Of a stretch of 64,000 nucleotides of DNA, positions 10,737 through 63,649 are shown piece by piece. The notes under the pieces were generated by a model. That model ran no database searches. It saw only the letters and a list, made by a program, of their open reading frames with translations, and was not told the DNA's origin. Position numbers and translations under genes: made by a program. The DNA comes from Hydrolagus colliei (Eukaryota). The stretch spans positions 9,176,001 through 9,240,000 of the forward strand of contig CM068761.1 of NCBI GenBank assembly GCA_035084275.1. Direction: 5' to 3'. Position 1 is the first letter of the stretch, and every line of letters starts with the position of its first letter.

Positions 10737-10742
10737 TTTATT
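10737..10742 (-). promoter_or_regulatory. PolyA signal of cluster A (equivalents 23972-23977, 37326-37331, 54361-54366)
   Basis: AATAAA on the minus strand ~170 nt after each C stop codon, conserved in all four clusters. Confidence 0.8.
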
Positions 10743-10908
10743 GCAAACTCAAACTACTCCACATTTTGATCTGAATTACAACTGCATCGAAATACAAACG
10801 GCGCGATACTGTGACACAGTTTGGCTCGTTATCAAAATGTGGGAATGTCGAATTGAACATTTCTCAAGAAGGCTCCGTGGGCAGTACAGTTCAGTACAGT
10901 TCCCGGAA

Positions 10909-11231
10909 TCATACACAGGTGGATCTGGCGATGGTTGTTTTAAGAGGATCTGCCCGAGCCTCGTGTTTGACCAGACAGGAATACAGCTCGTGTGACTCCC
11001 ACTCGGAGGCTGGCAGAGTCAGATAACTGCTCACACTGTACGTGTTGTCCACCTGCTGCTTGATCGCACTCGTTTCAACACCTTCACTTCTGGCACTGCC
11101 ATCCACAGTCCACTTGACCTCCACAGCTCCCGGGGTAAAATCATTCACCAGACACACCAGGGTCGCCTTGCTCTTTGCTGTGATTTGATCTGGTGACGGC
11201 GGAAGGACAGTCACCGAAGGTGCCCGTGGGT
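10909..11231 (-). CDS. IGLC: Ig light-chain constant exon, cluster A (type II/lambda-like)
   Basis: TTTCCAG acceptor; 323 nt encoding (N)PRAPSVTVLPPSPDQITAKSKATLVCLVNDFTPG..W..SSYLTL..YSCLVKHE..TCV*. Canonical C1-set Cys/Trp residues and penultimate Cys. Confidence 0.97.
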
Positions 11232-12893
11232 CTGGAAATAAAGATTGAGTTTTAAAAACATCTGCTGAGAACTTTATCATTTCTCTCTGATGGTTTAGCA
11301 ACATAAAGTGCTCCTCTCTTCACTCCCAATTGATGCGAATCTCAAACTAATCTCGCCTATATACCGGCCACTAACTTTACCATTTTGCTAAGATCGATAG
11401 TTACCTACAAACTCTGGCAGCTGGTATTGTGATAGATGTGATTCTGTTTCAGGTAAATCATTACTATGTTTAGCAGAAACACGTTGATGTTATTCAAACA
11501 ACTGCTTGTTGTGTTAAAATGATAAGAAATAGATTAATTACGGCTGGAAAACACGCGAAAAATACTGTCGGGATCAATGTGATGAGTGTTGTGGATGCGA
11601 GTGTATAATGATTACACTCTAAACGTTCAGATCAAACCAATTGATAATGAGTTACAGTGATTAGAGCTCCTGCGATAGAATCCTCTTAAAATAACAATAT
11701 ATTTGTTGCAGAAACAGTGTGTTTAGAGTTGACCAGTCACCAGTGAGTTGTGGTCAGACTTCAATTGCACTTTATACCATCATGTTCACTGTGTTTACAG
11801 CTCCCGCTGGATATTATTCTAATCTTTCGCATTTCTATTCTAAACCAATTCTGAATTTGATAATCAATGTGAATTATCAGCGATGATTTGATCCTGTCGA
11901 TAAAATAACCATTATTAATCAGAAACTATCCACAACATTGCGTTTAAAGTTGGAGATGAAGTATAGTTGGTGTTTGGGCTGGCCATGGGCCAGTGTACCT
12001 CCCGCCCACATTCGCTGTTCACTGTTCTCAACATTTACAGATGAACTTACAGCTTTGCTGCAGTTGGCGATTTGGGTTTTATTTTCCTTCAATAACAATT
12101 ACCTGGTCAGTAAAGCCGTCGGTGAAAAAAAGATGATTCACTTTATGGCTGTTTGTGGGACATTGCTGAACACAATAACACGATGGCCACAAATGCACAG
12201 TCACTCACTGTGCAGTAAATACTGTGAAGTTCATTGAAATATCTCGACCATAGGGTGACAGTTATTATTGTTGTTATTGCTATTATACATGCAGTATTAT
12301 TAAGAACAATACAGTCAACGTTTCCATCCGATCTCTTTAAAGTAAGCCAAAGAACTGTCTGTTGCTAATGTTTGGATGATCCTGGCAGCAAAGTCTGGCC
12401 TCTCAGCTTTCTCTCTATGTCAGATCTGCAGAGATGTGTGAGGCCACCTATTCAACACCGTTAGTAGCAATAAATAATCCTTTAATATTCTGCTATCATG
12501 AACTAATTCGTTGGTCACGGGCTGAGATTTGCTACGGGAATGTCGGGTTTGTAACAAGATTCGATGCGAATCGGAATACAATCGGTTACAATACAACACC
12601 ATCTACATTGGTGTCGCGGTTGCCTGGCGGGAGGATTTCGCAAATGACCAAAACAAGTGAAACTGAATTAAAATAGGAGAATATCGCATTCAATTGATAC
12701 AATGGAATTCATACGGTAAACTTCTCACCACCAAGAATTCAAACATATACCTATCACGTTAGAAAGGTTATCAATGAGGTCAGAATATTGATGCAAATGA
12801 TTTTTCGAAAAATAATTGAGCTCAATGTAAAATACAGCGCCAGATAAACGATGAATAAAAACCCAATCTGCACCAAATCAGGAATATACTTAC

Positions 12894-13422
12894 TGCCAAT
12901 CCCCACTCTGGTCCCTTTACCGAAGAATAAGCCCGATTCCCACACAGCACAGTAATAATCAGCGGCGTCATCCCCCTGAACACTGGAGATGATTAAATCG
13001 CCAGACCTGGAATCCCTGGAGCCCGAGAATCGATCGGAAATTCCCGACATCCTGGTGAAGCTGTTCACTCCATTAGTGTACAGGAGATACTGAGGAGCAT
13101 TCCCCGGCCTTTGCTGGTACCAATACACAGTTTCGCTGCTAATACTGCCCCCAGTCATGGTACATCCCAGGGTCAACTTCTCTCCCAGGGAGGTAGAGAC
13201 CGACGGCGGCTGATGTAAGGCTGGCAGCGAGTTTACACCTGTAAAACAGTAAGTCAGGAGAACACATAACAATACATGATGATTCTCAAATAAAAGGCAA
13301 CTCAAAGCTCTCAGCCCATGTACCCAACACAAGAACAAAGAACAGGAGCAATAATAATCCCTGAAGGACTCACAGTGGAGGCAAGTCATCAATGTGGCGA
13401 GAAATGGAATCCAAGGCGCCAT
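12894..13422 (-). CDS. IGLV: Leader (13422-13374) plus germline-joined VJ exon (13238-12894), cluster A; CDR3 AVWESGLF
   Basis: GTGAGT/TTTTACAG intron; V with C..WYQQ..DYYC running in frame into FGKGTRVGIG, then GTAAGT donor. Spliced L+VJ+C is 717 nt (238 aa). Confidence 0.97.
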
Positions 13423-13500
13423 GGTGAGGGTTGCGGGATCGGTCACAAACTCCAACCGTTTCCTGACAACAACTGACTCTGGGTATCAGCCCGTGGCTCA

Positions 13501-13555
13501 GTTTATGAACTGACCCAATTCTGAACGTCACACGGCGCTGATCAGTTATGCAAAT
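13501..13555 (-). promoter_or_regulatory. IgL V promoter, cluster A (octamer 13548-13555)
   Basis: ATTTGCAT on the coding strand, CCAAT, TGACGTTCA and CATAAA. Confidence 0.85.
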
Positions 13556-16500
13556 CCCCCGGGGCCGCCTGGCCCGGCCCGTTCACCTCCACCCGAGAGC
13601 CGGGTGACCAGCGGCTCATTGACAACACTTCACACTCACAGGAATAAAGCACAGGATCAGTGGATTCTCAACTCGAATCTGAGACGTTTATACTTTTGTT
13701 GTTCGGTTAGCGGATCATTTACCAGCGACACATCAATTCAAACAATGTGGAGGAAATGGTCATCCGGAAATATCACCAAATATTCACATTCAAAAACTGT
13801 GGCATTTTTATGAATAAATGACATATTTATATAACGTGGTAGATTTGTTGAATTGCAGCTGGAAAGGGTGAAGAATTATAAACTAAATCATGTTTTATAG
13901 ATAAGTACAAATATTCAAATATCCCAGTTTGGACTTGGATTCCATTGTAGGTATTTGCTTGTAATAAGTAATAAGAATAATATTTCTTGCATTTGCTGTA
14001 GAGAATTTCTTGTCTTCTAAACGACTCAGGAACTTCACAGGATGTACTGTTATTGGAAGGCAAGATGGGTTAGTCAAATGCGCTCAGCAATGTCCCACAA
14101 CCAGGCATCGATTGAAGTGACCAAGTTATCATTTATTTTATTATTGTTTAAATGGACGTTGAAAGGTTTCTGTTAATAGTTTCCATGGAGGTAAAGCACG
14201 AGTTTCCACACATCAAGTTATGATGTCAACGAGTCAATTTTAAGTTTGTATTGACTTTTTCTTGCTGATTTAACCTAACAATTTAAAGGAGTCTCAAGAG
14301 GTCTGACTGCCCCACGGCTCCGTCCTACTAACAACAACAACAACAACAAAATTACATTGATAAAGCGCCTTTCACGTCGGGAGGATGTGAAAGGCTAAAC
14401 AGAATTTACGTTTGAGATTGTATCAGCATGGATTCCCGCAGCTCAATGGTTACAGCGTTTGCAAAGAAGAGATATGGGTTATTTTGCCGGCAAGGCGAAA
14501 CCTTGAGCAAGGTTCCTGTTTCCACACTGACTGACAATAGTCCCTCGATTAACAGGCAATTAAAATTGGTCATTTGAATCCAGAACAGTTTGTGGAGCGC
14601 TGCTGTGCGCAGTTTGCTGCCTGTCTTGTCCACAAAACTACAGTTAATTCACCATCGACTACCCCAATAACACACTCATCACAGTATCCTTTCACACGAC
14701 ATAAAAGAAAAATCCATGTATTATTAGAAATCAGGTAAAACAATAAAGAATTTACACATTTGATCACTAGTTAACACATATCTGCCGTTTATTGCAAGCT
14801 ATGACCTCAATGAATCACTTCTGCGTTTGTAATGACTTGTTTTTGCTGATTTAACATAACAAGTTACAGCAGTCTGTATAGGTCAGCGCCAAGGGTCCGA
14901 CCCGCGAAAAAGAATTAACGTTTGAGATTGTTTCACCATAGAGTCCTGTAGCTCAATGGTTAGAGCACTTGCAAGCAAGAGATATGGGTTGTTTTCCCGG
15001 CAGGGCGAAACCTTCAGAAAAGTTTCCTTTCTCTACACTGTCTGACAATAATCCCTCGAAAAAAACCAATGATACAATTTCAATTCAGGACAATTTGTGG
15101 ATTCCTCTGTGCGCTGTTTGCTGTCCATCTCACCAACAAAAATACAGTTAATTCACCATTGCCTACTCCAATAACACACTCCTCACAGCATCCTATTACA
15201 CTATCAATAACACATGAAAAATCCATCTTTATTGGACGTCAGAGAAAAGAATATACAATTGACACGTTTGATCACTTCATCCTCTTTAAGCAGTTTGTTA
15301 CTAAACATTAGATGACAATTTACAGCATTATTCTATTATACATTCAAAGACAGCAGAGAACATGGTGTGGATGGGTTAGGTGAAGTGCTGATATTATAAG
15401 AGTACATACAGTATTACAGAAGTGGATTGTGGTGGAGGGAAGCAATTACTTTTCATTGAATAAGGAATAAGATTTCGAATGTAGTCTGATGATTTGCTTT
15501 CACAGAACCTTTAATGTAGCAGGAAAATATGATATGTTTTAACCGTTCACTGCAGTTTTGGAATGTGTTGATGTGTTCCACTTATTCTGAAAAATCCCAG
15601 TTTAGCCCCTGATTCCACCATAGTTAGTTGGTAAAACTATTGAAATAAATTATATTGACGTCTAGTTATTCCTTATGCGCTGTGCTCGCTTTAGCAGAAT
15701 AAGTGATTACAGTTTATAAACCAGAGTCCTGTAGCTGAGTGGTTAGAACTCGCCTTGCAAGCGAGGAATCTGGGTTCAATTCCCGGACGGGTTAAAACTT
15801 GGGCAAGTTTCCTTACTCCACATGCCTAATAAGAATGCCTTAAAAAAATTAGTAATTTTATCTACAACTGTATGTGGGACACTGCTGTGCATAATTGGCT
15901 GCCGCATTTCACCCCCATATATACATATACAGTCAATTCATTTTACAGTATATTCTGTTTGTGAAGCGATTTGAAATGTCTAAATGACGCATAAAGCGCA
16001 AATAAATCAACAAATCAATAATCCTTCCATTAGATATAGCGCATTCCACATTTTATCGGTGTCTCAAATGAAAGGATTATTATTATTATTATTTGGATTT
16101 TTTGGCCGAAAATCGTATCAAATGTAAAAACCTATTGAGAGATTTGAACAAAGCATTGCATCCTGAAGCTCTGCAAATACAGGTGTTTGTACCTAATTTC
16201 AAGCCCTTAAAAATTATATATTGTGTGATGTTCAATGCAGGCCCTGAGCTCACAATCTTGGTGTCTGGTATTTCATTTCTACCTTACACCACATCAATGT
16301 TTAACTCATGTGTCGTCAATATTTCCAACATCTAAGATTTCAAAACCTGAATATCCAACTCAATAGGCTGCAGATCATCGAGAACTTTGCTTTCATGTCT
16401 CCTTCTGCTCCTACAGGAGGCTTCAAGAAATTATCAACCCCACCCCTTACAAATCAATGCCACATTCTCTTCACCAAGCTGACTGCCTTGCCTCCTTCAA

Positions 16501-19500
16501 GGTAGTTATCAGGACCTTCGACCACCTGTTTGACCTCCCTGCTACCTTCCCTGCCCTCCCAATACACTGATTCAATCCCCTCAACATGACTCCAAATCAC
16601 TGACAAGACAGCGCCTTGGGATAATATCTAGATATGAAAGGCAAAACACAAATGTAATTTCATAATTGTTATCTAATTGTGTCTAGCCGTATGGTTATTT
16701 CTGGATCATGACTAATCCCAAGTCAATGAGCACACAAGCCCATGTGGGCATCGACACCACACTACACTACACTGCGTGAAGGATACTACATAAATGCAAG
16801 TTGTTGTTGACATCGTTGTTTTAATACTTGTTTTAGAATGCCAACTGGGTGACATTCAGCAAATCTATGTGGTTCTCTAGCTTTTTGCTTCCTATCAATC
16901 ATCATGTACGGATTGCGTTAGCATCATACTTTTCCTCATATACTTTTTTTTATCTGCATATATATATACATCCGATGACAAAGTTAAAAATTGAATCATG
17001 CACAAATGAAGGATGATCTCCAAACCAATCACAGATCATTTCCTAGTGCTGAATTCTACCATTATTAAATTATCTTCCAATCATACTGGTTAGATCATTC
17101 TTTCTAAATCCATAATAATGATACATTTTGGATTACATTCTTTTAGCTCCTTATTTGGGAGGTTGGCTCGATGGTCGTTGTGAAAATCAGCCCATTAGCT
17201 TATTGCAACATGGCAGAAAGAGCCAAAAACAGAATTATAAATTTTAATTTGGTGGAAGGATGTCTAATATACTACAAATTCTTATTCTCATCCAAAGTAG
17301 AGCAAGTCTGAAAATGCAATGAACCTCCCCACCCTGTACACAACGCTGCATTGGAGTATCAACATTGACAATATATGTTCCAACTGTAGACGTGGTGCTG
17401 GAACTCCCAATGCTCTGAATCTTGGGTAGAATGCCTGCAACTGTGCCAGACAGTCACACTGGCACATACAGTCATCTGGCATGCCTTTAGTCAGAAAGTG
17501 AATAAATGACGTTGAACCAATCACACATCATTCCCTGGTCCTAAATTCTATGCATAGCAGTTTACCTGCCAATTGCACCCTATAGGACCCTTCTTTATCT
17601 GTCCAAAGTTATAATACATTGATCGTTACTTTAATGTTCACGTTACATTTGTAGGATGGCAAATGGATCAATGAATATTCTGCATATTTGCAGCAGCCCA
17701 TTCAGACGCAACAGTTTTCCACAAGCAGCCATGAAGTGAATCAAAATATCAACAATAAATTACAGTTGTATAGCACTGAATGATGAATTCTAATTTGGGT
17801 GCATCTTGTCCAGGATGTGGCAAATGCTCCTTTTACCTTTTCAAATGTGTCATATTTTAGATCCAGATAAACTACCAGACTGAGATCTCATTGTAGCAAT
17901 GGCACCTCCAACAAAATAGCAAATCTGCAGCACAGCATCAGTGTCAACATTTACAATATATGTATATGTTCCAATTCCATGTTTGGTGCTTGAAACCCCA
18001 ACCCTCTGATTCAGAGGGTAATTCCAATTGAGCCAGGCTTACAAACTGACACAGGTGTCAATGTTCCTTCTTGCCTTCCACCTGGAGCGTTCCAAATGCA
18101 TGACTAAGCTGCTAAATTAAGTCTCGTGGCACAAGGGTAGAGCACTCACCTTGCAAGCGAATAATGTAGGATGAGTCGACCTTGACATTGTGGAGGGCTT
18201 TAAATGTGAGGACCAGGATGTTGAATTGGATCCTCTGGATGATGGGGAGCCAATAGAGTCAGGCGAGGATGGGGTAGATGGGGTCACAGAGTTTGGAACG
18301 GTAGAGAACATGAGCCGCAGAGTTCTGGATTATCTGCAGCCTGCGGAGGGAGGGGTTGGGAAGGCCAACCAGCAGGGCATTTGTATAATCTATCTGGGGT
18401 GTAGTGAAGCCATAGATGAGGGTTTCAGTGTCTTTGGGGGTGAGGTAGTGGCAGAGTAGGGCAATGTTGCAGATGGGGAAAGGCAGAGCGAATCATTGAT
18501 TGGATGTGGAGGAGGAAAAACAGTGGAGTGTTCAACAAGACACCTAGGATCCTGACTGGCTTTGTGAGTTTGAGAGTGCCACCATGGAGGTTGATGCTGT
18601 CAGCGCCTGGTGCAAGAAGTCACTGGCATGAGCCAGTCAGTAGCGCCTCTGTCTTGTTGACATTCAACTGTAGAAATTTAGCTCTCTTCCAGGACTTGAT
18701 GTCTGACCACTGTCAGGAGAGTGGTAGTCCAAGAGTCCAAGGCAGAGGCAGAGTGACAGAGTTGGGTGTCATCTGCATACATGTGGAAGTTAAACCAATA
18801 TCTGCAGATGATGTCAGGTTGTAGATGTTGTAGCTGTTGATTTTGAAAAGTAAGGGACAAGGACAGAGCCCTGGTGGATGCCATGGGGTGACAGTGCGGG
18901 GCTGGAGGAGAAGCCGTTGGTGGTGACAACGTGTAGGCAATGAGAGAGGTACAACAACATTAACAGCTTTGATTTATATAGCGTCCTCCACGCTGGAAGG
19001 TGTCTCAGAGAGCTTCACAATAGCGCATCCTGGGACGAGCCAGGGGTAAAGGTCTTCAGCTGGGACCTGAAACTTAGCAAAGAGGGGAGAGGTGAAGGTA
19101 GTGAAGAAGGGAATTCCAGAGCCTTGGGGCATAGTGGCTGAATGCATGGTCACGAAGGTGGAGCGGAGGATTTGGGGGACTTGTGGGAGGCCAGACACAC
19201 TGGAGCAAAGGTAACGGGTGCTGGTTTGAGTTGACGGGAGGTCAGAGATGTAGGGGTGTGCAGAGGAGTGGAAGGATATGAAGACAAGGGTGAGGATCTT
19301 GAAGTCGATCCTCTCTGGGATACGGAGCCAGTGAAGTCTGGCCAGGACTGGGGTAATGGGGGAGCGACGTTTTGTGCAGGTGGGAATACAGGCAGCAGAG
19401 TTCAGAATGAGCTGGACTCTGGATTGTGGAGGAAGGGAGACCAGCGAGGAGGGCACTGGATTAGCCCTGTCGAGAGGTGTCAAAGGCGTGGACCAGGATT

Positions 19501-22500
19501 TTGTTGGCTTTTAGGGTGGGGTATTGCCGGAGACGGGTGCTGCATTGGAGGTGGAAGAAGGCAGAGCTGGTGAGGGAGTGGATGTGAGGGAGGAAGTACA
19601 GTTGGGGGTCGAACTTGACCCCAGGTTATGCACAGGTTCACAGAGTTTTTCGGTCAGGTGACAGCAGTGGGAATGGAGACATTGACAAGAGCCAAAGAGT
19701 ATGAGTGGGAGTCGAATCAGGCAAGGACAGGTCTGTGGAGATTGACCAGCCAGGAGATGCGGTTTAGGAGGACATTGTTAAAGGCAGCAGAGAGGTCAAT
19801 GAGTACAGGAGGGAAATGAGCGAAGCTGGGAAGCAATGACCCATTGGAGAGGAATGGGAGGTTGGCGATGGGGCAATAGCTAGAGATTAGTAATGCATCA
19901 AGAGTAGGTTTTGTCAGATGGTGATGATGAGAGCAGTTTTTAGAGGAATGGGGATGCTGCTGGTGGATGCACAGAGGGGAATTTGATGATGTCAGTTAAG
20001 AGGGGGGAAAGGAGTTGGAGCTGGGAGATGAGAAGAGGGGTGGGGATGGGGTCAAGGGAGCAGGTGGTTGGTTTGATTTTGCAGAGGATAGCAGAGAAGG
20101 TGGGGGAAGAGGTATCTAGTGGGGGTGGGAGGGAGATGGATCCTATGGAGTGTGAGTGTGGGCTGAACGAATCCCTTTTGAATTTCACCGACAAATGTAC
20201 AGTCAACTCACTTTAAAGAATATTTTGTGATGCACTGTAAGTAGTCTAGAAGACTTGAAAAGAGCTATACCACATTTTAAAAAATTATTATTAAAATTTA
20301 TTGTTAATAAAATTCCAATATTATCAATTCCTTGCTCTACTGAAATCGAGAACTACTCCAAATCTAGCTACTCCCAAGCATCTCTTATATCCCAAATACA
20401 GACCTTCAAGTGTCTCTTAGTTCTCTGCCACACGTTGTCCAAGCATTCTCCAACTTACTGCCCCTCAGACCCATTTCTCATTGTCTCCCTTGTAGTTTTT
20501 CCCCATTATTATAAATCTTTTTTCTGGCTACTGACCTATGGTTTCCGCCCCCCACCCCCACCCACTCCTGATAAGGAGTGATTGGTGGTGTCACAGAGTA
20601 TAGGGACGAAGAGGTAGTGTTTGGAGATAACAATGCTGTGGAGATGGATTCAAGCGAGCGGGTTGTGTGTTTTATGATCGATATGGTGGTGTTTGGTGAA
20701 AAGGGGGAAATGTAGAAGCGGCAAATGGTAGGGGTCGAGTGTGTGCCGAAGGTGGGGAAGGATCTGCGTTTGGGGTGAGGGGACAGGATTGGGGTTGGGT
20801 CAGAGGCTGCTCAATGGATTTGGAAGAGGCAAGAAAGGAACAGTATGTTCTCATCTCATCCGGCCATATATCCAGGTGGACCATTATGTGACATTTGAGC
20901 CTGTTCCATTCGATGGCCTGAACCTTACCCCAGAGGAGTAGATGCGGCTGGTGTAACAGAGTGAGGATTGTGATTTGGACGTGGTTCTTGAGGTGAGGAG
21001 GGCAAGGACATTGAGAGTAGTTAAGGGAGTGTTATGGAGGAAAAGTATTGAGCAGGATCAGTCAGTGTGTGATCACATTTCCCTGGTTTTAGTCCAAATA
21101 AACAACCGCCATCACTTCATCTCCATACATCATTTTACCTTCTGCCCAGGCAGTCACCTGTGTTTTACCCCAAGGCTTAAACCAGGGTCACTTTTTCCTT
21201 AGAGTATTTACACGCTATCTCTCCCTAATATAAGTTGCAAGAATGTTGGATTTATCCCAATGCACGCCAATCAAATCCAAATATATCTATTCTCCTCTTC
21301 ATCCTTCTCCTTGTAACACTGAGACAACTCATGTTTCATTCAGTTGTTTGTCAGACATCAACTCCTGGTTCAATACCAATTTCCGGCAGTTATATTTCAA
21401 CGAGACGGAAACCATACACTTTGGCTACTATCAGTATTATTTCGACTGTCGATCTGACCTGTTCGGCCACCGACAGCACACACCACCTTCCCCTCTACCA
21501 CAGCCACTTCCCACATATTCCAACCATGTACCATATCTTTAGTGAACCCAGGTGTCAGGTTCAATATGATTCACAGCAGGAATCTACTCCCAAGCCAGTT
21601 TGACTTTCTGCCAACTCTGTCATATTGCCCAGCTACACAACACACTGAATGCAGTTGGATTCTTGCCCCATTTCTCTGTCACCTCCACTCTCGACTACTC
21701 ATTACCCTCCTATTCTCCACTGTCCAAAAATCGAAAGTTTGGTCTGTTGTAGGCGGAGGGGGGGGGGGGGGGGGGGGGGAGGGCAAGGTAAGAATCAGAG
21801 GTCGTCCAGCAGACAATGGAGCTAAATGTGGAAGTGTTGATGAATCGAAATCAGCCTACTGTTGCGGAACTTTGAAGGTGTTTTCAGTAGGCAGTGTTGG
21901 AAGCAGTTTTGAAGTAAAGGTGGTAGTCAAAAAAGTGGAAGAGGTTAGGTCCATTGGAGAAGAACTTGAATCATTAGCAATTGGGTGTGGAGAAAGTTCA
22001 AGAGAAAAAGTAATGGGATTATGGTCAGTTACAATGATGGAAACAGAGAAGGAAAGATGCGACAAATGTTTTTATAATACAAACATTAGGGGAGGCACAG
22101 AAGAGAGATGGAGGGAAGGCAAGAACTGGAAGATGCTGCACAGCGGATTTTGGTCATGTCAAACACATAACAATATTAAGTGCTGAGAAATGCGATTGGG
22201 AGTGAAGCGCACGATAATCAATGCAATCTGTTGGGATGGCACTATACTAATGTAATTCTGTTGTTAGTTGACCCTGTCCCTGGCTCGGTCCCGGGATCCA
22301 TTGTTGTGAAGTGCTCTCAAACGCTGTCAGGTGAGGAGTGCGCTATATAAATCAAAGATGTTGTTGTTGTCACCTTTCTTATTTGTCATGAGTGGATACG
22401 AATGCAGTGACAGTGGAGATCAGAGGAAAGTGTTCCTTTCTCTCCTTAACCCAACATATTGCACAATTTATCTCTTACCCTCTCACAGCCCGAAATCAGA

Positions 22501-24143: not shown

Positions 24144-24466
24144 TCATACACAGGTGGATCTGGCGATGGTTGTTTTAAGAGGATCTGCCCGAGCCTCGTG
24201 TTTGACCAGACAGGAATACAGCTCGTGTGACTCCCACTCGGAGGCTGGCAGAGTCAGATAACTGCTCACACTGTACGTGTTGTCCACCTCCTGCTTGATC
24301 GCACTCGTTTCAACACCTTCACTTCTGGCACTGCCATCCACAGTCCACTTGACCTCCACAGCTCCCGGGGTAAAATCATTCACCAGACACACCAGGGTCG
24401 CCTTGCTCTTTGCTGTGATTTGATCTGGTGACGGCGGAAGGACAGTCACCGAAGGGGCCCGTGGGT
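24144..24466 (-). CDS. IGLC: Ig light-chain constant exon, cluster B
   Basis: 323-nt intact exon, canonical acceptor, nearly identical to cluster A (KQEVD vs KQQVD). Confidence 0.97.
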
Positions 24467-26654: not shown

Positions 26655-26732
26655 GGTGAGGGTTACGGGATCGGTCACAAACTCCAACCGTTTCCTGACA
26701 ACAACTGACTCTGGGTATCAGCCCGTGGCTCA

Positions 26733-45258: not shown

Positions 45259-47447
45259 TCTGGATGATGGGGAGCCAATAGAGTCAGGTGAGGATGGGGT
45301 AGATGAGGTCACAGAGTTTGGAATGGCAGAGGACATGCGCCGCAGAGTTCTGCATTATCTGCAGCCTGCGGAGTGAGGAAGTGGGAAGGCCAACCAGGAA
45401 GTTTGTATAATCTAGTTTGTATAATCTAGCTGGGATGTAATGAAGGCATGGATGATGGTTTCAGTGGCTTTGGGGATGAGGTAGTGGCAGAGTCAGGCAA
45501 TGTTGCAGAGATGGGGAAAGGCAGAGCAAGTCATTGATTGGATGTGGGGGAGGTAAGACAGTTGATTGTTGAACGAGACACCTAAGTTCCTGACTGACTT
45601 TATCAGGTTGAGTGTGTCACCATGGAGGTTGATGCTGCCAGCGCCTGGTGCAAGAAGGCACTGGCATGAGCCAGTCAGTGGGGCCTCTGTCTTGTTGACA
45701 TTCAACTGTAGATGGTTAGCTCTCTTCCAGGACTTGATTCCTGAAGAACTGTCTGTCACGACAGTGGTAGTCCAAGAGATGAGGGCAGAGGCAGAGTGAC
45801 AGAGTTGGGTGTCATCCGCATATATGTGGAAGTTAAACTAATGTCTGCAGACGACGTCACGTTGTAGATGTTGTAGCTGTTGATTTTGAAAAGTAAGAGA
45901 CAAGGACAGAGCCCTGGTGGAAGCCGCGGGGTGACAGTGTGGGGGCAGGAGGAGAAGCCATTGGTGGTGGCAATGTGGTGACATGAGAGAGGTACAACAA
46001 CAACAACTTCGATTTATATAGTGCCCTCCATGCCAGACGGCGTATCAGAGCACTCCACAATAGCGGATTCTGGTACCAAACCAGGGGGAGAGGGAGAAAG
46101 GTGACCAAATTTGCGGTCAAATAGAGAGGTCTTCAGCTGGGACCTGGACTGAGAAAAGAGGGAGCGAGGTGAAGGTAATGAGGAAGGGAATTCCAGAGCC
46201 TCGGTCCTTAGTGGCTGAATGAACAGCCACCGAGGGTGGAGCAGAGGATTCGGGTAACTTCGAGTAGGCCAGACCCACTGGAGCAAAGGCAAAGGGTGCT
46301 GGTTGAGGGAAGTAGGGGTGTGCAGTGGATTGGAGGGATTTGAAGACAAGGTTGAGGATCTTGAAGTCGATCCTTCTGGCATAGTGATCCAGTAAAGTCT
46401 GGAAAGGATTGGGGTAATGGGGGAGCGAAATTTGGTGTGGGTGAGAATGTGGGCAGCAGACTTCTGAATGAGTTGGACTCTATGGATTGTGGAGCAGGGG
46501 AGAATGGCGAGGAGTGCATTGGAAAAGAGGTGTCAAAGGCGTGGACCAGGATTTCAGTGGCTTTTGGGGTGAGGTATTGTTGGAGATGGGTGATCTGTCG
46601 GAGGTGGAAGAAGGCAGTGCTGGTGACGGACTGGATGTGAGGGAAGAAAGACCGTTGGAGGTCGAACCTGATGCCTAGGTTGTGCACAGGTTTGCAGAGT
46701 TTTACGGGCAGACTGTGAAGGTGAGGAGGTGAGAGCAGTGAAAAATTGAGACATTGGCGAGAACCAAAGAGTATGATTGGGTGTCGAGCCAGGCAAGGGC
46801 ACGTGTGTGTTGATTGACAAGCCAGGAGAGACAGTGCAGGAGGACCTTGTTAAAGGCAGCAAAGAGGTCAAGGAGTACAGGAGGGAAATGAGCGAAGCGG
46901 GAAGCAATGACTCATTGGAGAGGAAGGGTGGTTGGAGATGTGGCAATAGCTAGAGAGTAGTAATGCGTTGAGAGTAGGTTTGATCAGATGAGGGTGATGA
47001 CAGCAGTTTTTAGAGGAATGGGGATGCTGCTGGTGGATAGGCAGAGGTTGATGATGTCAGTTAAGAGGGGAGAATAGGCGACAGAGCTGGAAGATGAGAA
47101 GAGGGGTTAGGGATGGGATCAAGGGAACAGGTTTGTTTGTTTTATTTTGCGGAGGAGCAGAAAAGGCTGGTGGAGAGATATCCAGTGGGGGTGGGAGGGA
47201 GATGGATCCTAGAGGAGAGTTAGAAGATGTGGGCTGAACGAATCCACTCCATTTTCACAGACAAATATACAGTCAACTTATTTTAAAGTATATTTTGTTA
47301 AGCGCTTTCGGAAGTCTAGAAGACGTAAAAAGCACTATACCACATTCAAAGATTGTTATTATCAATTCCTTGCTCCACTACTCCAAACCTAGCTCCTCCA
47401 CGACCATCATCTCTGATCACTTAAATCCCAAATAGAGAACTTCAAGT

Positions 47448-49222
47448 AGATTCATAGATTCATAGAATTTTATGGCACAAAAGGAGGCCATTCGGCGCAT
47501 CTAGTCTGTGCCGGCTCTTTGAAAAGAGCGATTCAATCCCACTTCCCTGCCCGCTCCCCATAACCTAATAGACCTGTTCTCCCTAAATAAAGATCTAATT
47601 CCCTTTTAAAAGTTGTTATCGAATCAGCCTCCACCACCTTTTCAGGCAATGCATTCCAGATTCGACCAACTCGCTGAGTGAAAAAATTTCTCCTCAGCTC
47701 CCCTCTGCTTCGGCTTGAAACTATTTTAAATCTGTGACCAAGAGTCACAGATTCGCCCACGAGTGGAAATAGTTTTACTCTATTTGCCCTGTCGAAACCC
47801 CTCATGATCTTATAAACCTCTATTAGGTCTCACCTCAATCTTCTCTGCTCCAGAGAGAATAACCCTAGCCTATCTAGCCTCTCCTCATAGCTGAAGTCCC
47901 TCAATCCTGGCACCATCCTAGTAAATCTTCTTTGTACCTTTTCCAATGTCTTCACATCCTTTCTGTAGTGTCGTGACCAGAATTGAACACAGTATTCCAG
48001 CTGAGGCCTTACCAAAGTCTTATAGAGGTTAGTCAGCACTTCCTGACTTTTGTACTATAGACCCCTATTTATAAAGCCTAGTATCCCATATGCCTTCTTA
48101 ACAGCCTTGTCTGCCTGTCCTGCCACCTTCAACGAGTCACTAACACAAATCTCCAGGTCTCTCTGTTCCTTCACACCATTTAAAATTGTACTATCTAGCC
48201 TATATTGCCTCCCTTTATTTCTTCTCCCAAAATGCATCACCTCACAATTCTCTGCATTAAACTTCATTTGCCATGTGTCTGCCTACTTTACCAATTTGTC
48301 TATATCCTCTTGCAGATGGCTACTATCCTCCTCACTGTTTACTATTCTCCCTAACTTAGTGTCATCTGCAAACTTGGAAACTGTACTCCGTACACCCAAG
48401 TCCAGATCAGTGATGTAGATTACAAACAGCAATGGTCCCAAAACTGATCCCTGTGGCACACCACTGCTCACTTCCCTCCAGTCTCAAAAACAGCCGCTCA
48501 CTACAACTCTCTGCTTTCTGTCACGCAGCCAGTTGTGGATCCACGCTGCCACTGTCCCTTTTACGCCATGGGCTTTTAATTTCCTAATAAGTCTCTCATG
48601 TGGCACTTTGTCAAATGCCTTTTGAAAGTCCATGTAAACTACATCAACTGCGCTACCTTTATCCACCCATTCCGTTACCTCATCAAAAAATTCTATCAGA
48701 TTTGTAAGGCAAGATTTGCCTTTAACAAATCCATGTTGACTGTCCTTCATTAGCCTATATCTTTCTAAGTGAAGATCTACCTTGTCCCTGATTATGCACT
48801 CTCGAAGTTTGCCCACTACCGACGTTAGACTGACTGGTCTGTAGTTACCAGGCTTGTCCTTCTGCCCCTTTTTATATAAGGGAGTAACATTAGCTATCCC
48901 CCAGTCCTCTGGCACGACTCCTGTGTCCAAGGAAGATTGAAAGATCGTGGCCATAGTCCCTGCTATTTGCTCCCGTGCCTCCCTTAGTAACATAGGGTGC
49001 ATCCCAACCGGACCAGGTGACTTATCCACCTTGAGTGACGTCATCCTTTTTAGAACATCCTCTCTGGTTATAATTATTCCATCCTTTTCTCCTACCCTCT
49101 CCTCCAATACCATAGCATTGGCTGTATCCTTTTTTTTTGTGAAAACAGAGGCGAAGTACTCATTCAGTACATCAGCCATGCCCTCTGCCACCACAATGAG
49201 ATTGTGGAGGCAGAGGGCATGA
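47448..49222 (-). mobile_element. 5'-truncated CR1 LINE (RT region and 3' end) private to the C-D spacer
   Basis: PGNYRPVSLTSVVGK, QHGFVKGKSCLTNLIEFF, VYMDFQKAFDKVPH, GVPQGSVLGPLLF, KFADDTKL and an (ATTCTATG)-type tail. Flanks rejoin the uninterrupted CTTCAAGT|GTCTC site of other units. Confidence 0.93.
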
Positions 49223-52175
49223 GTGTCTCATAGTTCTCTGCCACACGTTATTCAAGCATTCTCCAACTGACTTCCCTTCAGACCCATTTCTCATTGTCTC
49301 CCCTATAGCTCTTTTGCCAATTAATATAACTCTGTTTTTTTCCAGCTACTGAACCCCCCACCCACCCCCACTTTCCCCCCACCCCCTCCCCACGAAAGTG
49401 ATGACGATAAGGAGTGATTGGTGGTGTCATAGAGTAGAGGTAGTGTTTGGAGATAACAAGGGTGTGGGGATGGATTCAAAGGAGTGGTTTGTGTGTTTCA
49501 TGGTCGATATGGTGGTGTTTGGAGAAAAGTGGGAAATGTGGAAGCGGCGAAGGTAGGGGTTGAGTGTGTGCAGAAGGTGGGGAAGAAGCTGTGTTTGGGG
49601 TTGAGGGTGGTGGTGGGTCAGAGGCTGCTCAATGGATTTGGAAGAGGCAAGGGAGGAACAGTATATTCTAATCTCATCTGGCCACATAGGCAGGTGGACC
49701 ACTAAGTCAAATTTGAGCATATTGCATTCGATGCCCTCCACCTTACCCCAGAGGAGTGAGTGCGGTAACAGAGTGAGAATTGTGATTTGGATGTGGTTGC
49801 TGAGGTGAGGGGGCAAGGGCATTGACAGTAGTTGAGGGAGTGTTATGGAGGAAAAGGATTGAGCAGGATCAGTCAGTGTGTGACCACATTTCTCTGGTTT
49901 GAGTCCAAATTAGCCAACCACCATCACTTCATCTCCATAAATCATTTTACTTCCTGCCCAGGCAGTCACCTATGGTTTATCCCAAGGCTTAATCCTGAGT
50001 TTCCTTTTTTCCTTAGAGTATTTACTCGCTACCTCTCCCTAATGCAGGAATGTTGGATTTATTTATCCCAATGCTTGACAATCAAATCCAAGTCTATCCA
50101 TCTATCCTCCTCTTCATCCTTCTCCTTGTAACACTGGAACAAATCATGTTTTATTTAGCTGCTTGTCAAATATCAAGTCCTGGTTCAACGCCAATTTCCA
50201 GCAGCTGCATTTCGACAAGATGGAAACCATACATTTTGGCTCCTATCAGTATTTTTTCTACTGTGGATCTGACCTGTTCAGCCACCCACAGCACATTCCC
50301 CCCAACCACCCCACCTCCACCTCCACGACCACCACCACCTACCTATCCCTAAAATGTACCAAACCTGTATTGAACTCGGGTGTCAAGTTCGATTTGGTTC
50401 ATAGGATGAATCTCCTCACAAACCAACACGACTTTCTTCCACCTGTGTCATATTGCCCAGCTACACAACACACTGAATGCAGTTGGAAACTTCCCAATGC
50501 CTCTGTCACCTCCTTTCTCGACTACTGAATAGTCTCCCCTTCTCCACTGTACACAAAATCAAAGGTTCGCTTGTGGAGGGGGAGGGGAGAGGGGTGTGTA
50601 GCGTAAGAATCAGCGGCCCTCCAGCAGGTAATAGAGCTGTATTTGGGTGTGTTGATGAGTGGAAACCACCTACGTTTGCAGAACTTTGAATGTGTTTTCA
50701 GTAAGCAGTGTTGGAAACAGTTTTGAAGTGAACGTGGTAATGAAAAGAGAGAAAGAGTTTAGCAGAGAGTGTGGAGAAGAAGTTGGATCATCAGCAGTAT
50801 GGTGATGAGAAAGGTCAAGAGAGAAAGTAATGGGATTATGGTCAATTACAATGTTGGAAATCGAGAAGGAAAGATGCAATAAATGTGTGTATAATACAAA
50901 CACTAGGGGAGGCACAGGAGAAAGATGGAGGGAAGGCAAGAAGAGGCAAATGCTGCCTAACGGATTTTGCTCATGACAAATAAATGAAAATAATAAGTGC
51001 TTCGAAATGCCATTGGGTGTGAAGGGCACTATAATCAATGCAATATGTTGGGACGTCCTGAAGTCGTGAAAGGCTCTATACTCATCTAATTTTGTTGTTA
51101 GTTGCACCTGCCCCTGGCTGGGTCCCAGGATCCATTGTTGTGAAGCGCTCTGAAACGCTGTCCCGTGTGGAGTGTGCTATATAAATCAAAGATGTTGTTT
51201 TTGTAGTTGTTGCTTTTATTATTTGTCATGAGAGGTTACGAATGCAGTGACAGTGGAGATCAGAAGAAATTGTTCAGCTCCCTCCTCAACCTAACATATT
51301 GCACAATTTATCTCTTACCCTCTCACAGATTATTTCAATCACATTATTTTGTTTTTGCCATTATTATTTTCGACTTTCTTTGTCTTTTTTTCATTGGACC
51401 TTATGGAGATAACTCCCAAACATGTTTCTGATCTGTTGTCCGTTACAGTTCCTTCGTGAGACAAAATAATGGGTATCCTCAGGTTATTTTGTAATCGATT
51501 AATTGAACGAACTGATGCATGTTATCTGGTCAATTTAGCAAAGATAAATCATATTTGATTCTGATTTAGTTTTCTGGTACCATTCCTGAGTATTGTCCTG
51601 GGATGCAGTTCATAGATTGTAATGGATGTCAAGACCACCAAAGACCTTTCCTGGTGGGACAATTATAAACATCATCTCACTGGAGGCGTTTGCCCAGCGA
51701 CGCTCCCTGTCACTGTTACCAGTCGGACATCTGCCCAGAAAATAAACTACGTTTATCTCCCAATGTCAACCAAATATTTGCCACAGAAGAGCCCAATATA
51801 ATGGTATCCTAATGGGTAGTCTATCTAGACCAGTGCTGTTGATAATGTGTAAGAAAAGGTCTTCAAAATCAAACGTTTCCAGGTTTAAATAATACTTTTT
51901 GAAAAGCGGACAGCCGCCCAAAGATGTTTTGTTATTCCAGTGTGGGAAATAAACGCGCCGAATGAGGCGAGAACCCGCCCAATCAGCAAACATTGGCAGC
52001 GGGTCTCAGGGCGACTCAATTTATTGGTGGATCCCCTCCCCCCAGCGGTGCGTATTGGCTGCGTATTGGCATCCACCCCCAGCACGTTAGGTTGGCGGTC
52101 AGCTGTCCATCACCCCGAGAACACGCCCCCCTCCCCGGCCAGCCAGTCACCCTTTCCTGCCTCGGGGCCCCGCGC

Positions 52176-53508
52176 CAAGGCCGTACGCAGGGGGGGTGCG
52201 ACGGGTGCGTACGCACCCCCCCAAATTATAAAAGGTCCACATTTTCCGGGGTAGAGAATTGTATTTTTTATCAAATTTAAATACCAAGTAAATTTATTGA
52301 GCATTTGTGTAACAATCAGTTCTTCAAAACTATGTATAAATTATAAACTCACATCTTTGAATGATTTAGTATTAATATAAAATTATCGAGTCGCACACCA
52401 GAATCGGCGTCTCCCCAAAACATACCGCGTCGATAGACCAGTCCATGACGCGGCGAGTCTGTGACTCGTGATTGGATAAACATAGGCGCCAAGACTCAAA
52501 CCCTCGTTTGGAAATCATCCCGTAAACAGCCACAAGGGGCAGCACCAATTCTGGAGTTAAAATCATATTTTCATCTGATCACCGTAAGTAAAAATTACTC
52601 AAGTGTTGAGAGGTGTGGCTGTAATGCTAGCAAACAATGACGACATATTTACAAGCTATTGAGAAATTAAAGCTTTTGAGAAGCCAACAAAAAAGTTATA
52701 TGCTGGACGGGAATGCCTATCTTTAAAAAAGATACTCATGGACGTAGGCCTATGCTTTAGCGCCTATGTCTACGTGGTGTGTCAATCGGAAATCATCCCG
52801 TATACAGTCACTACATAAAAAGGTAGCACCACTTTGTGGAAGCTGAAATCGTATTTTAATCTGATAAATGTAAGTAAAAATGATTTAAGTTTTGATAGGC
52901 GTGTTTCTGAAATATCATGTTTCTTGTTTTGTCTTGATTATCACATTTGATTTATATTATTAAAGATGTATTCCTGTAATTAAAAATTGCTTTTAGAGAC
53001 GTCCACTGGCATGCAAAAAAATATGACCGCAAAGATAAACAGTGCGACTTTATTTCACATTCAGTTTTGTACCCAGAGTGAAAAAAACATCAATGTCGCA
53101 CGAATTTGGCATAAAAATAGTTTCACCGTCATCTGATCGAGCGAACTCGGGCATTGACAACCACACTTCTGCACTGATCCCTTCTCTCCATGCAGCCTGA
53201 ACACTCCCGCCTGCCAATACCCCAATCGCGCTCCAGAGTATCGAGTATTCGACCTTCCAAAAAAATTTAGACACGGACTACCGGGGAAAATAAAAACACT
53301 GAATAAATACTGATGCTCTTAAACACCAAGGGCATGAAACATTTACCGTTCATATTGGATCTTCTGAACCGATTAAATAAGACCTCAAACTGTGTAAAAC
53401 GTCGGAGCCTCGAGGGGGCTTCGGGGTCAGCCCCCAAGCCGCCGGCCATTGTTGGTCCCATCACTAGCAATTCGCACCCCCCCAAAAAAAATCCTGCGTA
53501 CGGCCCTG
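52176..53508. mobile_element. Non-autonomous DNA transposon (TIR element, hAT-like termini), 1333 bp
   Basis: 16-bp TIRs CAAGGCCGTACGCAGG / CCTGCGTACGGCCCTG (1 mismatch). CGCGC is duplicated at 52171-52175 and 53509-53513; the empty site GGGGCCCCGCGCTATTG is present in the other three units. Confidence 0.85.
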
Positions 53509-54532
53509 CGCGCTATTGTATTTCATGTTCCTGAGGCCTCCACTGCATCAATTTATAATAATCCTGACAACGATGGAGAGTTATAAGGAATTAAGATACA
53601 AACAGTCGGTTTGGGGGGTTAGCGCTGACACGTGTTGAGTGTAAAGCAATTAAAAGCATCTGCATCATGGCTGAAAATACCAGCAGCCGCGGGTCGGTAA
53701 CATGAATGGTTTTGCTGAGAGTGGATCGGAGAACATGTCAATATGAGGGATTGGATAAGGGAACTGTATAATGGGCTGCAGTGAAATATTGTTCTCACTC
53801 GTTTATTTCCTGACTGTCAGTGACAGCGGGAGGGGGCGAGGGGGGGATACGTTGTGGATTTGAGCCAAAGAACATTGAAATGACGCTCCAACAAGAGCTT
53901 TCCGTCCAATATTAATAGTAAATGGCAACTGATAATCTGCGGAAAATTGGGTGAATGTTGGAATTTAACCCGCCAATAACCACACAGTTTGCTATTGGGA
54001 TTACCAGCCACCTTCCCGCTGCTTGTTCAGCTCGCACCAAGTGTGTAGTCATGGCGTTGGCTTGCGGAACAACAACAACAACAACAACAAATTACATTTA
54101 TAGAGCGCCTTTCAGGAACATTCTTTATTTGTCAGTAAATAATATGATCAATAAAACAGTGTCAGTGATGGCAATGAATCTGTGACTTTATTAAGCGGAG
54201 CTACTTAATAATGAAACAATGTGATTGTTAAGAGCCAGGAAACTAGCAAGAGGCAGAAATGGCATTCAGCTATTCCTAGATAATTGTACATTAATTAGTA
54301 ATCCGCGAATCGCTGCGATAATTTAAAATAGAGAATGAAACAGAAGTAAAACAAGTTTTTTTTATTGCAAACTCAAACTACTCCACATTTTGATTGGAAT
54401 TACATCAGCATCGAAATACAGACGGCGCGATACTGTGACACAGTTTGGCTCGATATCAAAATGTGGGAATGTCGAATTGAACATTTCTCAACAAGGCTCC
54501 GTGGGCAGTACAGTTCAGTACAGTTCCCGGAA

Positions 54533-54855
54533 TCATACACAGGTGGATCTGGCGATGGTTGTTTTAAGAGGATCTGCCCGAGCCTCGTGTGTGACCAGAC
54601 AGGAATACAGCTCGTGTGACTCCCACTCGGAGGCTGGCAGAGTCAGATAACTGCTCACACTGTACGTGTTGTCCACCTCCTGCTTGATCGCACTCGTTTC
54701 AACACCTTCACTTCTGGCACTGCCATCCACAGTCCACTTGACCTCCACAGCTCCCGGGGTAAAATCATTCACCAGACACACCAGGGTCGCCTTGCTCTTT
54801 GCTGTGATTTGATCTGGTGACGGCGGAAGGACAGTCACCGAAGGGGCCCGTGGGT
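54533..54855 (-). CDS. IGLC: Ig light-chain constant exon, cluster D
   Basis: 323-nt intact exon; LVTHE variant. Confidence 0.97.
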
Positions 54856-56333
54856 CTGGAAATAAAGATTCCGTTTTGAAAACATCTGCTGAGAACTTTA
54901 TCATTTCCCTCTGATGGTTTAGCAATATAAAGTGCTCCCCTCTTCACTCCCAATTGATGCGAATCTGAACCTAATCTCGCCACGTTAACCTCCAATATGT
55001 AATCTTTATCTTTTACATTTTGCTACAATTTAAATAGCAATCTGTGCGCTCACTATTGTGATAGATGCTTCTATTGCAACTGAAGCATTGGTATGTTGAG
55101 CACAAGCAAATATAAATTATTGAAACAAGTTTTTTCCGTAGGAGAAAACAACAGAATTCGGTTAATTACGGCCAGAAAACACACTGTACAGAAATATGCA
55201 GCCATTGTAGATTCGCTAAACAAATCGAAAGGAAATATTTCATTAGCAAGAGGCGTGGGTTTGAATAAATATCTTGTAATTGGGTATAATTTACAGACCA
55301 AAGGTTAACAGATCGAATGGATAACAGAAAGGAGTAAAAAGGTTACATTCAAATGCTTTCTGCCGAGTATTTGATTTCGAAACAATTTTTAAACTCTGAG
55401 GAAGAATGTGGTTATTGTTGTGGATGTGTAATGGTTCCACTCTGAGATTCACGTGGATCCAAGTGAGAATGCGTTACAGTGATTAGAGCTACTGGGATAG
55501 AATCGTCTTGAAACAACAACATATTTGTTGCAGAAAGTGTTGACCAGGCACCAGTGTGTTGTGGTTAGACTTCAGTTGCATTTTACACCATCACGTTCAC
55601 CGTGTTTTACAGTTCCCGCTGGATATTATTGTAATCTTTTGTATTTCTATTCGAAACGATCCGTGTCTCTGTTATAACATGAAGTATTAGTGATCCATAT
55701 ACTGATAATAAAATATACATGATTAACAATAAATTAGTATCAGTATTACCATTGTCATTATCATTATACACGGAATATTACTCAGACGAGTAAATTGACT
55801 AAAACAGTTCCATCCCGGAGGTGATTGATATTTGTGTGATGTAGTTTCTATGCAAGCTTCGTAACTATCAAATACAAGCATTCACATTATTATTGTTAGT
55901 ATTATAGACGTGTTGCCAGTGTTTGGAGATAACAACAACAATAATAATTGTAATAATAATAATCCTTGCATTTGATATGCACTTCTCTCGTCTTCTGTTC
56001 ATCTCAAACTTGCAATAAGATTGGTCAATAAGAATAATATGATCTATTACAATTCAACACACTCCATATTGATATCGTTCCTTTCGGGTCAGGAGGATTT
56101 CGCAAAATTATCTAAAACGGCGAAACTGAGATAAAAGAATATTACATTGGTACTGTATACAAGAACCTGTAGTCCAATAACATTCTAGCCAGACATATGC
56201 TTAAATATACTGATGACATTGCAACGGTTAGGAATAAGTTCAGAATTTATTTCACTGAATTCTATGAAGTTATATAAAAACAGAGTTCATCATCGAATAC
56301 TGCACCGGATAAATTATTTAGCAAAATACTTAC

Positions 56334-56877
56334 TGCCAATCCCCAGCTTGGTCCCCGCACCGAAAATACATTGATCCTTTCCCGAAATTGCGTAATACAA
56401 AAAACAGTAATAATCAGCGGCGTCATCCCCCTGAACACTGGAGATGATTAAATCGCCAGACCTGGAATCCCTGGAGCCCGAGAATCGATCGGAAACTCCC
56501 GACATCCTGGTGAAGTTGTTCACTCCATCAGTGTACAGGAGATACTGAGGAGCATTCCCCAGCCTTTGCTGGTACCAATACACTTTAAAATGGTTGATAC
56601 TGAGCCCAGTCTTGGTACAACCCAGGGTCAACTTCTCTCCCAGGGAGGTAGAGACCGACAGCGGCTGATGTAAGACTGGCAGCGAGTTTACACCTGTAAA
56701 ACAGTAAGTCAGGAGAACACATAACAATATATGATGATTCTCAAATAAAAGGCAAATCAAAGCTCTCAGCCCATGTACCCAACACAAGAACAAGGAACTG
56801 GAGCAATAATAATCCCTGAAGGACTCACAGTGGAGGCAAGTCATCAATGTGGCGAGAAATGGAACCCAAGGCGCCAT
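56334..56877 (-). CDS. IGLV: Leader (56877-56829) plus germline-joined VJ exon (56693-56334), cluster D; CDR3 FLYYAISGKDQCI, J FGAGTKLGIG
   Basis: 360-nt VJ exon in frame, canonical splice sites; spliced product 243 aa. Confidence 0.96.
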
Positions 56878-56955
56878 GGTGAGGGTTACGGGATCGGTCA
56901 CAAACTCCAACCGTTTCCTGACAACAACTGACTCTGGGTATCAGCCCGTGGCTCA

Positions 56956-57010
56956 GTTTATGAACTGACCCAATTCTGAACGTCACACGGCGCTGATCAG
57001 TTATGCAAAT
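56956..57010 (-). promoter_or_regulatory. IgL V promoter, cluster D (octamer 57003-57010)
   Basis: ATTTGCAT on the coding strand; same layout as cluster A. Confidence 0.85.

Positions 57011-63424: not shown

Positions 63425-63649
<225 letters not shown>

Follow-up and report, generated by a model that had tools for sequence, protein, structure and literature searches.

A tandem array of joined immunoglobulin light-chain genes in the ratfish Hydrolagus colliei, very probably part of the chimaera lambda locus

Antibody genes whose variable (V) and joining (J) segments are already joined in the germline are a classic exception to the somatic assembly of antigen-receptor genes. A stretch of 64,000 nucleotides from the ratfish Hydrolagus colliei (GenBank assembly GCA_035084275.1, contig CM068761.1, positions 9,176,001 to 9,240,000; hereafter the window, in whose own numbering positions are given) raised the question of whether the genes for light chains of immunoglobulin (Ig) that it carries in series belong to this exception, and how they came to be joined. 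The array was very probably part of the chimaera lambda (type II / NS3) locus, made up of joined, self-contained cluster genes which originated by V(D)J-type recombination in germ cells and were multiplied in tandem.

A six-frame scan of the window displayed Ig-like reading frames on the minus strand only (four V-domain and four constant (C)-domain frames), and each of the four V-domain frames ran uninterrupted into the FG(K/A)GT motif of a J segment. Read directly, V and J were contiguous and in frame within one exon, as the first-pass annotation of this DNA had described for four clusters. Four gene models were obtained, with spliced proteins of 238, 238, 239 and 243 residues (clusters 1 to 4) and zero stops. 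The count of four clusters held for complete genes, but a fifth copy, which the left edge truncates (ATG at 101) and which was retrieved here by motif search, had been missed. The limits then given to the array, 10737 and 57010, coincided exactly with the polyadenylation (polyA) signal of cluster 1 and the octamer of cluster 4. The gene features, with the third complementarity-determining region (CDR3) of each complete copy, were as follows:

53..234, minus strand: cluster 0, the fifth, truncated copy; octamer 234-227, ATG 101, leader exon 101-53; the remainder lies past the left window edge.
10737..13555, minus strand: cluster 1; octamer 13555-13548, TATA-like CATAAA 13507-13502, leader exon 13422-13374, leader intron 13373-13239, VJ exon 13238-12894, J-C intron 12893-11232 (1662 bp), C exon 11231-10909, AATAAA 10742-10737; CDR3 AVWESGLF, J FGKGTRVGIG.
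23972..26787, minus strand: cluster 2, a recent duplicate of cluster 1; octamer 26787-26780, leader exon 26654-26606, VJ exon 26470-26126, J-C intron of 1659 bp, C exon 24466-24144, AATAAA 23977-23972; CDR3 AVWQSGLF.
37326..40042, minus strand: cluster 3; octamer 40042-40035, leader exon 39909-39861, VJ exon 39725-39378, J-C intron of 1557 bp, C exon 37820-37498, AATAAA 37331-37326; CDR3 GAWVSNTFI.
54361..57010, minus strand: cluster 4, the terminal copy; octamer 57010-57003, leader exon 56877-56829, VJ exon 56693-56334, J-C intron of 1478 bp, C exon 54855-54533, AATAAA 54366-54361; CDR3 FLYYAISGKDQCI, J FGAGTKLGIG.

All four complete genes shared one layout. A leader intron of 135 bp separated the leader exon (49 nt) from the VJ exon (345-360 nt), and the J-C intron, 1478-1662 bp long, led to a C exon of 323 nt. 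Splice sites were canonical (GTGAGT...ACAG for the leader intron, GTAAGT...CCAG for the J-C intron); the VJ exon ended in ATTGGCA directly before the donor GTAAGT, and the C exon was entered in phase 1 after TTTCCAG. The AATAAA signal was located 167 bp 3' of the stop codon in the complete genes. Their products retained Cys23, Trp41, the YYC motif and FG(K/A)GT, and matched the V-set (E = 6e-16) and C1-set (E = 2e-28) families of Pfam, and their C-terminal STCV contained the penultimate cysteine needed for the disulfide bond between heavy and light chains. Each unit harbored a cluster organization, with one VJ and one C, its own octamer-containing promoter and both introns. Processed (retroposed) copies, recognized by missing introns, a polyA tract and target-site duplications, were not what was found, both introns being kept with canonical splice sites. 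Since the leader and J-C introns were retained, V and J were joined in the DNA itself rather than through retroposition, in agreement with the first-pass annotation, whose listing of splice sites, octamer promoter and polyA signal was also borne out, these being intact in all four genes.

The octamer ATTTGCAT was found 133 bp 5' of the ATG in all clusters, with the TATA-like CATAAA 41 bp downstream of it. The total number of exact octamers in the window (7, versus 5.4 expected) was not significant, and the informative feature was their position, five window copies being each placed 133 bp 5' of an ATG.

Self-BLAST confirmed a head-to-tail repeat, with window positions 1-5736 matching 13322-19053 at 98.6%, and units 1 to 3 were mutually 94-98% identical over their full length. 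ATG-to-ATG distances were 13321, 13232, 13255 and 16968 bp. The previously proposed head-to-tail unit of ~13.3 kb was therefore right as to the tandem arrangement and to three intervals of 13.2-13.3 kb, but not for the last interval, which measured 17.0 kb.

Database matches pointed to the lambda isotype, as had been supposed. The best match was an immunoglobulin light chain of H. colliei itself (GenBank AAA59369.1; 95% identity over all 238 residues), followed by chondrichthyan lambda chains. AAA59371.1, which represents another V family of the ratfish and has almost the same C region, matched at 67%, and further matches included elephant-shark light chains, shark and ray predictions named 'lambda-1 light chain-like' and sandbar-shark lambda chains. 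Of the 120 matches listed, nearly all bore the name of a lambda or light chain from a cartilaginous fish, and the best matches among solved structures were human lambda chains. By sequence similarity, the window genes are classed as lambda / type II / NS3 light chains, three names in use for one isotype (PMC5192425, PMC5985310). The known type II genes of H. colliei (AAA59369.1, AAA59371.1, AAA59368.1) were of the same isotype, and AAA59369.1 displayed the same V family and CDR3 length; all four window proteins, however, differed from every deposited sequence and represent further paralogues. A type II family was reportedly isolated from H. colliei by Rast et al. in 1994.

A gene able to rearrange carries recombination signal sequences (RSS, heptamer-spacer-nonamer), none of which had been noticed in the first-pass annotation. 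The window was scanned on both strands for a CAC-anchored heptamer with at most one mismatch and a nonamer with at most three, separated by a spacer of 12 or 23 +/- 1 bp. These thresholds were adequate, as both real RSSs of a split horn-shark homologue (described below) would pass them. No RSS adjoining a V end or a J start was found on either strand of the window. The scan returned 11 weak matches, against 5.7 +/- 2.8 in shuffled sequence; several of them were one site recurring in each unit, and all 11 carried three nonamer mismatches. RSS-like sites such as those at 55558 on the minus strand (cluster 4 intron) and at 25403 on the plus strand (cluster 2 intron) were rejected, as none adjoined coding V or J and their total was consistent with chance. 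The conventional split cluster, in which V is followed by heptamer, spacer and nonamer and a separate J is preceded by its own RSS, was absent from the window and present in the horn shark.

Homologous loci of other cartilaginous fishes were taken from public assemblies via the proteins found in the database search:

Elephant shark (Callorhinchus milii, GCA_018977255.1; L001): joined; two tandem VJ-C genes and the C exon of a third.
Thorny skate (L002): joined; V family as in the window.
Sevengill shark (L004): joined; V family as in the window.
Cloudy catshark (L005): joined; V family as in the window.
Basking shark (L006): joined; V family as in the window.
Horn shark (L003): split; V family as in the window.
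Horn shark (L007): joined; other V family, 1.25 Mb from L003 on the same chromosome.

The split horn-shark gene (Heterodontus francisci GCA_036365525.1, CM071058.1, 55936925-55960622 reversed; split region 10482-10850) displayed both signals in full. Its V coding sequence ended at 10505, with CACAGCG, a 23-bp spacer and ACAAAACTA after it, and its J, which began at 10809, had AGTTTTTGT, a 12-bp spacer and CACCGTG in front of it. With a 23-bp RSS on V and a 12-bp RSS on J, the arrangement was of the lambda type, and the V-J gap of 303 bp matched the 300-400 bp given for split shark clusters in PMC2192082. This segment of RSS, gap and RSS is exactly what the ratfish genes lack and is of the kind that V-J recombination removes, so the joined state is most simply derived from the split one. 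The CDR3 of joined genes belonging to the window's V family was very similar to that of the window (e.g., skate AVWKDAVIFGKGTRLGIG versus AVWESGLFFGKGTRVGIG). The CDR3 of cluster 4 (56400-56340, minus strand) comprised 13 residues with an extra cysteine and was followed by a J that differed from that of cluster 1 (FGAGTKLGIG); it exceeded by ~10 nt what the split horn-shark gene would yield from its V end and J start without trimming.

The elephant-shark locus had the tandem layout of the window, with head-to-tail joined VJ-C units, a C-to-C distance of 13.3 kb (137-13763), the octamer 133 bp before the ATG and a C exon of 90-91% DNA identity, but it carried another V family (AFTLTQPPSIS...). 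Homology between the 13.3-kb spacers of the two species was considered and rejected, as only the C exon and dispersed short and long interspersed elements (SINEs and LINEs) aligned; because the spacers share dispersed repeats only, their equal 13.3-kb spacing is probably a coincidence. In ratfish and in five of the six other species checked (elephant shark, horn shark, sevengill shark, catshark and basking shark), and in both V families, the octamer occurred 127-133 bp 5' of the ATG; at the skate locus no exact copy was found on that strand. Such a conserved position argues for a presumably functional promoter. A second ATTTGCAT octamer was located inside the J-C intron of cluster 1 (12791-12798) and cluster 2 (26023-26030), on the minus strand, as well as in the elephant-shark genes (10614 and 23014 of L001) and the split horn-shark gene (10860 of L003), 13-145 bp past the J splice donor. 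Clusters 3 and 4 had no exact copy of this intronic octamer, which could be a regulatory element.

Differences between the ratfish copies were unevenly distributed. Of 244 aligned protein columns 35 were variable, with 7 in CDR1, 14 in CDR3, 4 in the C region (of 107) and 10 elsewhere, so that CDR1 and CDR3 together held 21 of the 35. Nonsynonymous divergence reached 0.225 in CDR1 and 0.54 in CDR3, versus 0.007-0.021 in frameworks and 0.008 in C, and the C exons differed by 0.3-1.5% with few replacements. Within the V block, CDR1 differences numbered 3, 3 and 13 per 39 bp, while the 760 bp outside CDR1 had 8, 8 and 14 (binomial p = 0.008, 0.008 and 1e-13). CDR-focused germline differences are likewise reported for joined skate genes of type I (PMC2192082).

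Sliding windows over the aligned gene regions displayed a mosaic. The V block, which begins ~330 bp upstream of the ATG and ends with the third framework region, was 97-100% identical in the four copies outside CDR1, and the C block, which begins ~126 bp upstream of the C exon and includes the 3' untranslated region, was 94-99% identical, with similarity extending 1.0-1.4 kb past the polyA signal. Among clusters 1/2, 3 and 4 the J-C intron was colinear, yet identity in its BLAST segments was only 70-79% (71-77% between cluster 3 and clusters 1/2), and the DNA upstream of the V block in cluster 3 was only 72-89% identical. Taken overall, the J-C intron and the cluster 3 upstream flank were 50-89% identical, and the conserved stretches of cluster 1 were placed at ~13750-13000 and 11358-9500, with equivalents in clusters 2 to 4. 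Clusters 1 and 2 differed by about 3.1% in their J-C introns (96.7% identity) and by ~4% in their spacers. As this intron divergence is ordinary, the intron was not mutating faster and the CDR3-J-intron segments are three old lineages; germline hypermutation as the source of the 20-50% J-C intron divergence was rejected on the same figures. The V and C blocks appear to have been homogenized, most simply by gene conversion or recombination, with a seemingly short tract that would end at CDR3, where homology ends.

Several other explanations of the array have to be weighed against a germline origin of the joins. Had the assembly caught rearranged lymphocyte alleles, the joins would be somatic, and the tissue sequenced could indeed have held lymphocytes; but all four of the adjacent clusters were joined, and in frame, and the rearrangement of a single B-cell clone would not be fixed in a consensus assembly. 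Moreover, the junctions of clusters 1 and 2 were identical except for one base (GAA versus CAA) across ~3-4% of non-coding divergence, and the join therefore predates their duplication and was copied by it. The 1994 GenBank ratfish protein had the same junction length (GVWESGYVFGKGT), and joined homologues occurred in independent assemblies of five other species. This evidence argues for a join that would be inherited and not somatic, and makes a somatic one hardly credible. The tandem copies themselves might be an artefact, with haplotypes or reads placed in series by the assembly, as the units of clusters 0 and 1 were 98.6% identical, within the allelic range of some species. The copies differed, however, in CDR1, CDR3, transposon content and intron lineage (70-79%), one spacer was only 81-87% identical to the others, and the independently assembled elephant-shark genome had the same tandem layout, which leaves an artefact a negligible probability. 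It is also very unlikely that the array is real but its genes silent or decaying and outside the used repertoire, as the four frames, splice sites, polyA signals and octamers at shared positions were all intact, the C exons had diverged by 0.3-1.5% with few replacements, and differences were concentrated in CDRs instead of being spread as in pseudogenes.

The fused VJ exons could also be relics of a primordial V gene that was never split, older than the insertion of the RAG (recombination-activating gene) transposon, a question posed as open in PMC2193156. Joined lambda genes were present in both chimaeras and elasmobranchs, with similar CDR3 lengths in five of six relatives, as such an origin would have it. 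Against it, a horn-shark gene of the same V family was split, with a 23-bp RSS on V and a 12-bp RSS on J. Tetrapod lambda loci have this same arrangement, which also counts against relics. The window genes further grouped with lambda of all jawed vertebrates, so the lambda ancestor was most simply split, and the cluster junctions varied in length (8, 9 and 13 residues) and sequence, as expected from imprecise joining; a relic origin is accordingly improbable. Derivation from split genes by germ-cell recombination is the preferred reading, and no evidence contradicting it was met in the sequence. Some points weigh against it or against what is built on it: diagnostic palindromic (P) or non-templated (N) nucleotides were not identifiable in the junctions for want of a split gene from ratfish to compare; synonymous changes contribute to the CDR1 excess (pS 0.15), and positive selection was not formally demonstrated; and the serine-codon comparison given below involves few codons and four non-independent paralogues.

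Under germ-cell joining, each 13-kb unit would function as a self-contained cluster gene, whose octamer-containing promoter would drive the leader, VJ and C exons. With the V RSS, the ~300-bp V-J gap and the J RSS all absent, expression would require no RAG cutting. The joined state most likely goes back to a V(D)J-type recombination in a germ cell long ago, after which the joined gene would have been inherited and, judging from the repeat structure, multiplied by tandem duplication and unequal crossing-over. Gene conversion or recombination may then keep the V and C blocks alike. Junctional and combinatorial diversity would be absent from such a system. Diversity would come instead from the choice among clusters, which differ mainly in their germline CDR1 and CDR3, from pairing with heavy chains, as is well established, and probably from somatic hypermutation.

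The serine codons of cluster 1 bear on this last source, with four AGY and one TCN in the CDRs versus one AGY and ten TCN in the frameworks (Fisher p = 0.013). Wagner, Milstein and Neuberger reportedly found in 1995 that an AGY serine bias in other V genes places hotspots of AID in the CDRs. Because CDR serine codons were biased toward AGY, and because joined skate genes are described as potentially somatically mutated (PMC2192082), somatic hypermutation is expected and probably acts on top of the germline set. The description of the array as a hard-wired repertoire, made in the first-pass annotation, hence stood for the junction and the germline CDRs but not for the repertoire as a whole. A more far-reaching reading, put forward only tentatively, is that of a managed germline repertoire instead of a simply amplified unit, in which gene conversion would time and again overwrite the ~750-bp promoter-leader-V block and the C block of all copies, while selection would keep three old CDR3-J-intron cassettes and drive CDR1 apart; we consider it possible, and on the whole doubtful.

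Outside the genes, the window comprised spacers of unequal age and, at its right end, the edge of the array:

13556..23971: standard intergenic spacer with LINE remnants and probable SINEs derived from transfer RNA (tRNA); equivalents at 235-10736 and 26788-37325, the spacers being 94-98% identical by self-BLAST.
40043..54360: long, older spacer between clusters 3 and 4, 81-87% identical to the other spacers by self-BLAST.
43945-44698, plus strand, and 48487-49227, minus strand: LINE reverse-transcriptase fragments in the long spacer (Pfam RVT_1, E = 2e-12 and 2e-16).
57011..60272: spacer upstream of cluster 4, 94-95% identical to the standard spacer (1-3505 versus 56777-60272 at 94.5%).
63425-63649, plus strand: exon 2 (residues 36-94) of DDT (D-dopachrome tautomerase, MIF family; Pfam MIF E = 5.5e-17, human DDT structures E = 7e-21).

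The extra LINE reverse-transcriptase fragments account for the 17-kb interval between clusters 3 and 4. Matches to tRNA-like Rfam families were found on the plus strand at 1625, 2408, 14942, 15725, 28967, 58397 and 59185, one or two per unit, and probably correspond to tRNA-derived SINEs. Reading frames at 60814-62268 on the plus strand resembled the region at ~47.5-48.2 kb in inverted orientation. The six-frame scan gave no Ig-like frame in the spacers, and Pfam gave RVT_1 only; additional spacer genes were rejected, the long frames there being of low complexity or LINE-derived.

By self-BLAST, repeat homology ended at 60272, beyond which some LINE remnants preceded the DDT exon; a simple motif search did not find DDT exon 1. 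As the repeat homology stops there and the DDT exon lies beyond it, cluster 4 is the terminal cluster of the array, and it was also the most divergent one. The human DDT gene is located on 22q11.2, near the IGL locus; the DDT flank thus suggests conserved linkage and would fit a ratfish array orthologous to the lambda locus of tetrapods.

Germline joining of lambda (type II) genes is reported for all cartilaginous-fish species studied (PMC5192425, PMC4279169), and RAG-like activity in germ cells is named as the source of the joins (Lee et al. 2000, PMC2193156); the first-pass annotation had stated the same. PMC5192425 refers to Rast et al. 1994 (Immunogenetics 40:83-99) for a mixture of rearranging and germline-fused light-chain loci. 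The array is thus a correct rediscovery of a known phenomenon, reportedly published for ratfish in 1994, with no new principle.

Other systems resemble the array in part. The joined clusters of skate (Raja) belong to another isotype, type I (sigma-2), and were characterized, according to Anderson et al. 1995 (PMC2192082), as at least 89 clusters in separate clones and not as a contiguous array like that of the window. The NS4 (kappa) clusters of nurse shark, again another isotype, provide the model in which germ-cell RAG-like recombination fuses split clusters (PMC2193156). Split and joined relatives are mixed there, as they are between ratfish and horn shark, but in nurse shark the split and joined genes of one species are close enough to reconstruct the joining steps, whereas the window genes are without a split ratfish counterpart. 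Tetrapod IGL loci (e.g., human 22q11.2) share the orthologous isotype, the penultimate C-terminal cysteine and the lambda-type RSS seen in the split shark homologue; they are organized as translocons, in which numerous split V segments and J-C cassettes have to be rearranged by RAG in each B cell, whereas the units of the window are complete pre-joined genes.

How Ig miniclusters are distributed in shark genomes 'is not well known', as a 2025 paper puts it (PMC12227049), but annotated public assemblies already display such arrays, as in elephant shark. The modest additions made here are a contiguous physical map with at least five lambda clusters of the ratfish as far as the array edge by DDT, the DDT flank itself, a split horn-shark relative, and a mosaic homogenization in which V and C blocks are alike while the CDR3-J-intron cassettes are old and the CDR1s divergent. 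No paper describing split lambda genes in sharks was found in the literature search, and the split horn-shark lambda cluster is at odds with reviews in which the lambda genes of the species studied are all described as joined. Together, the split horn-shark gene and the joined ratfish genes form a direct before-and-after pair for studying germline joining. If the array were indeed a managed repertoire, then, together with the split horn-shark cluster, lambda germline joins would have arisen more than once from split ancestors, and their junctions would have persisted over tens of millions of years as fixed specificities. Germline-joined genes such as those of the ratfish bear on the origin of RAG recombination and on whether it acts in germ cells.

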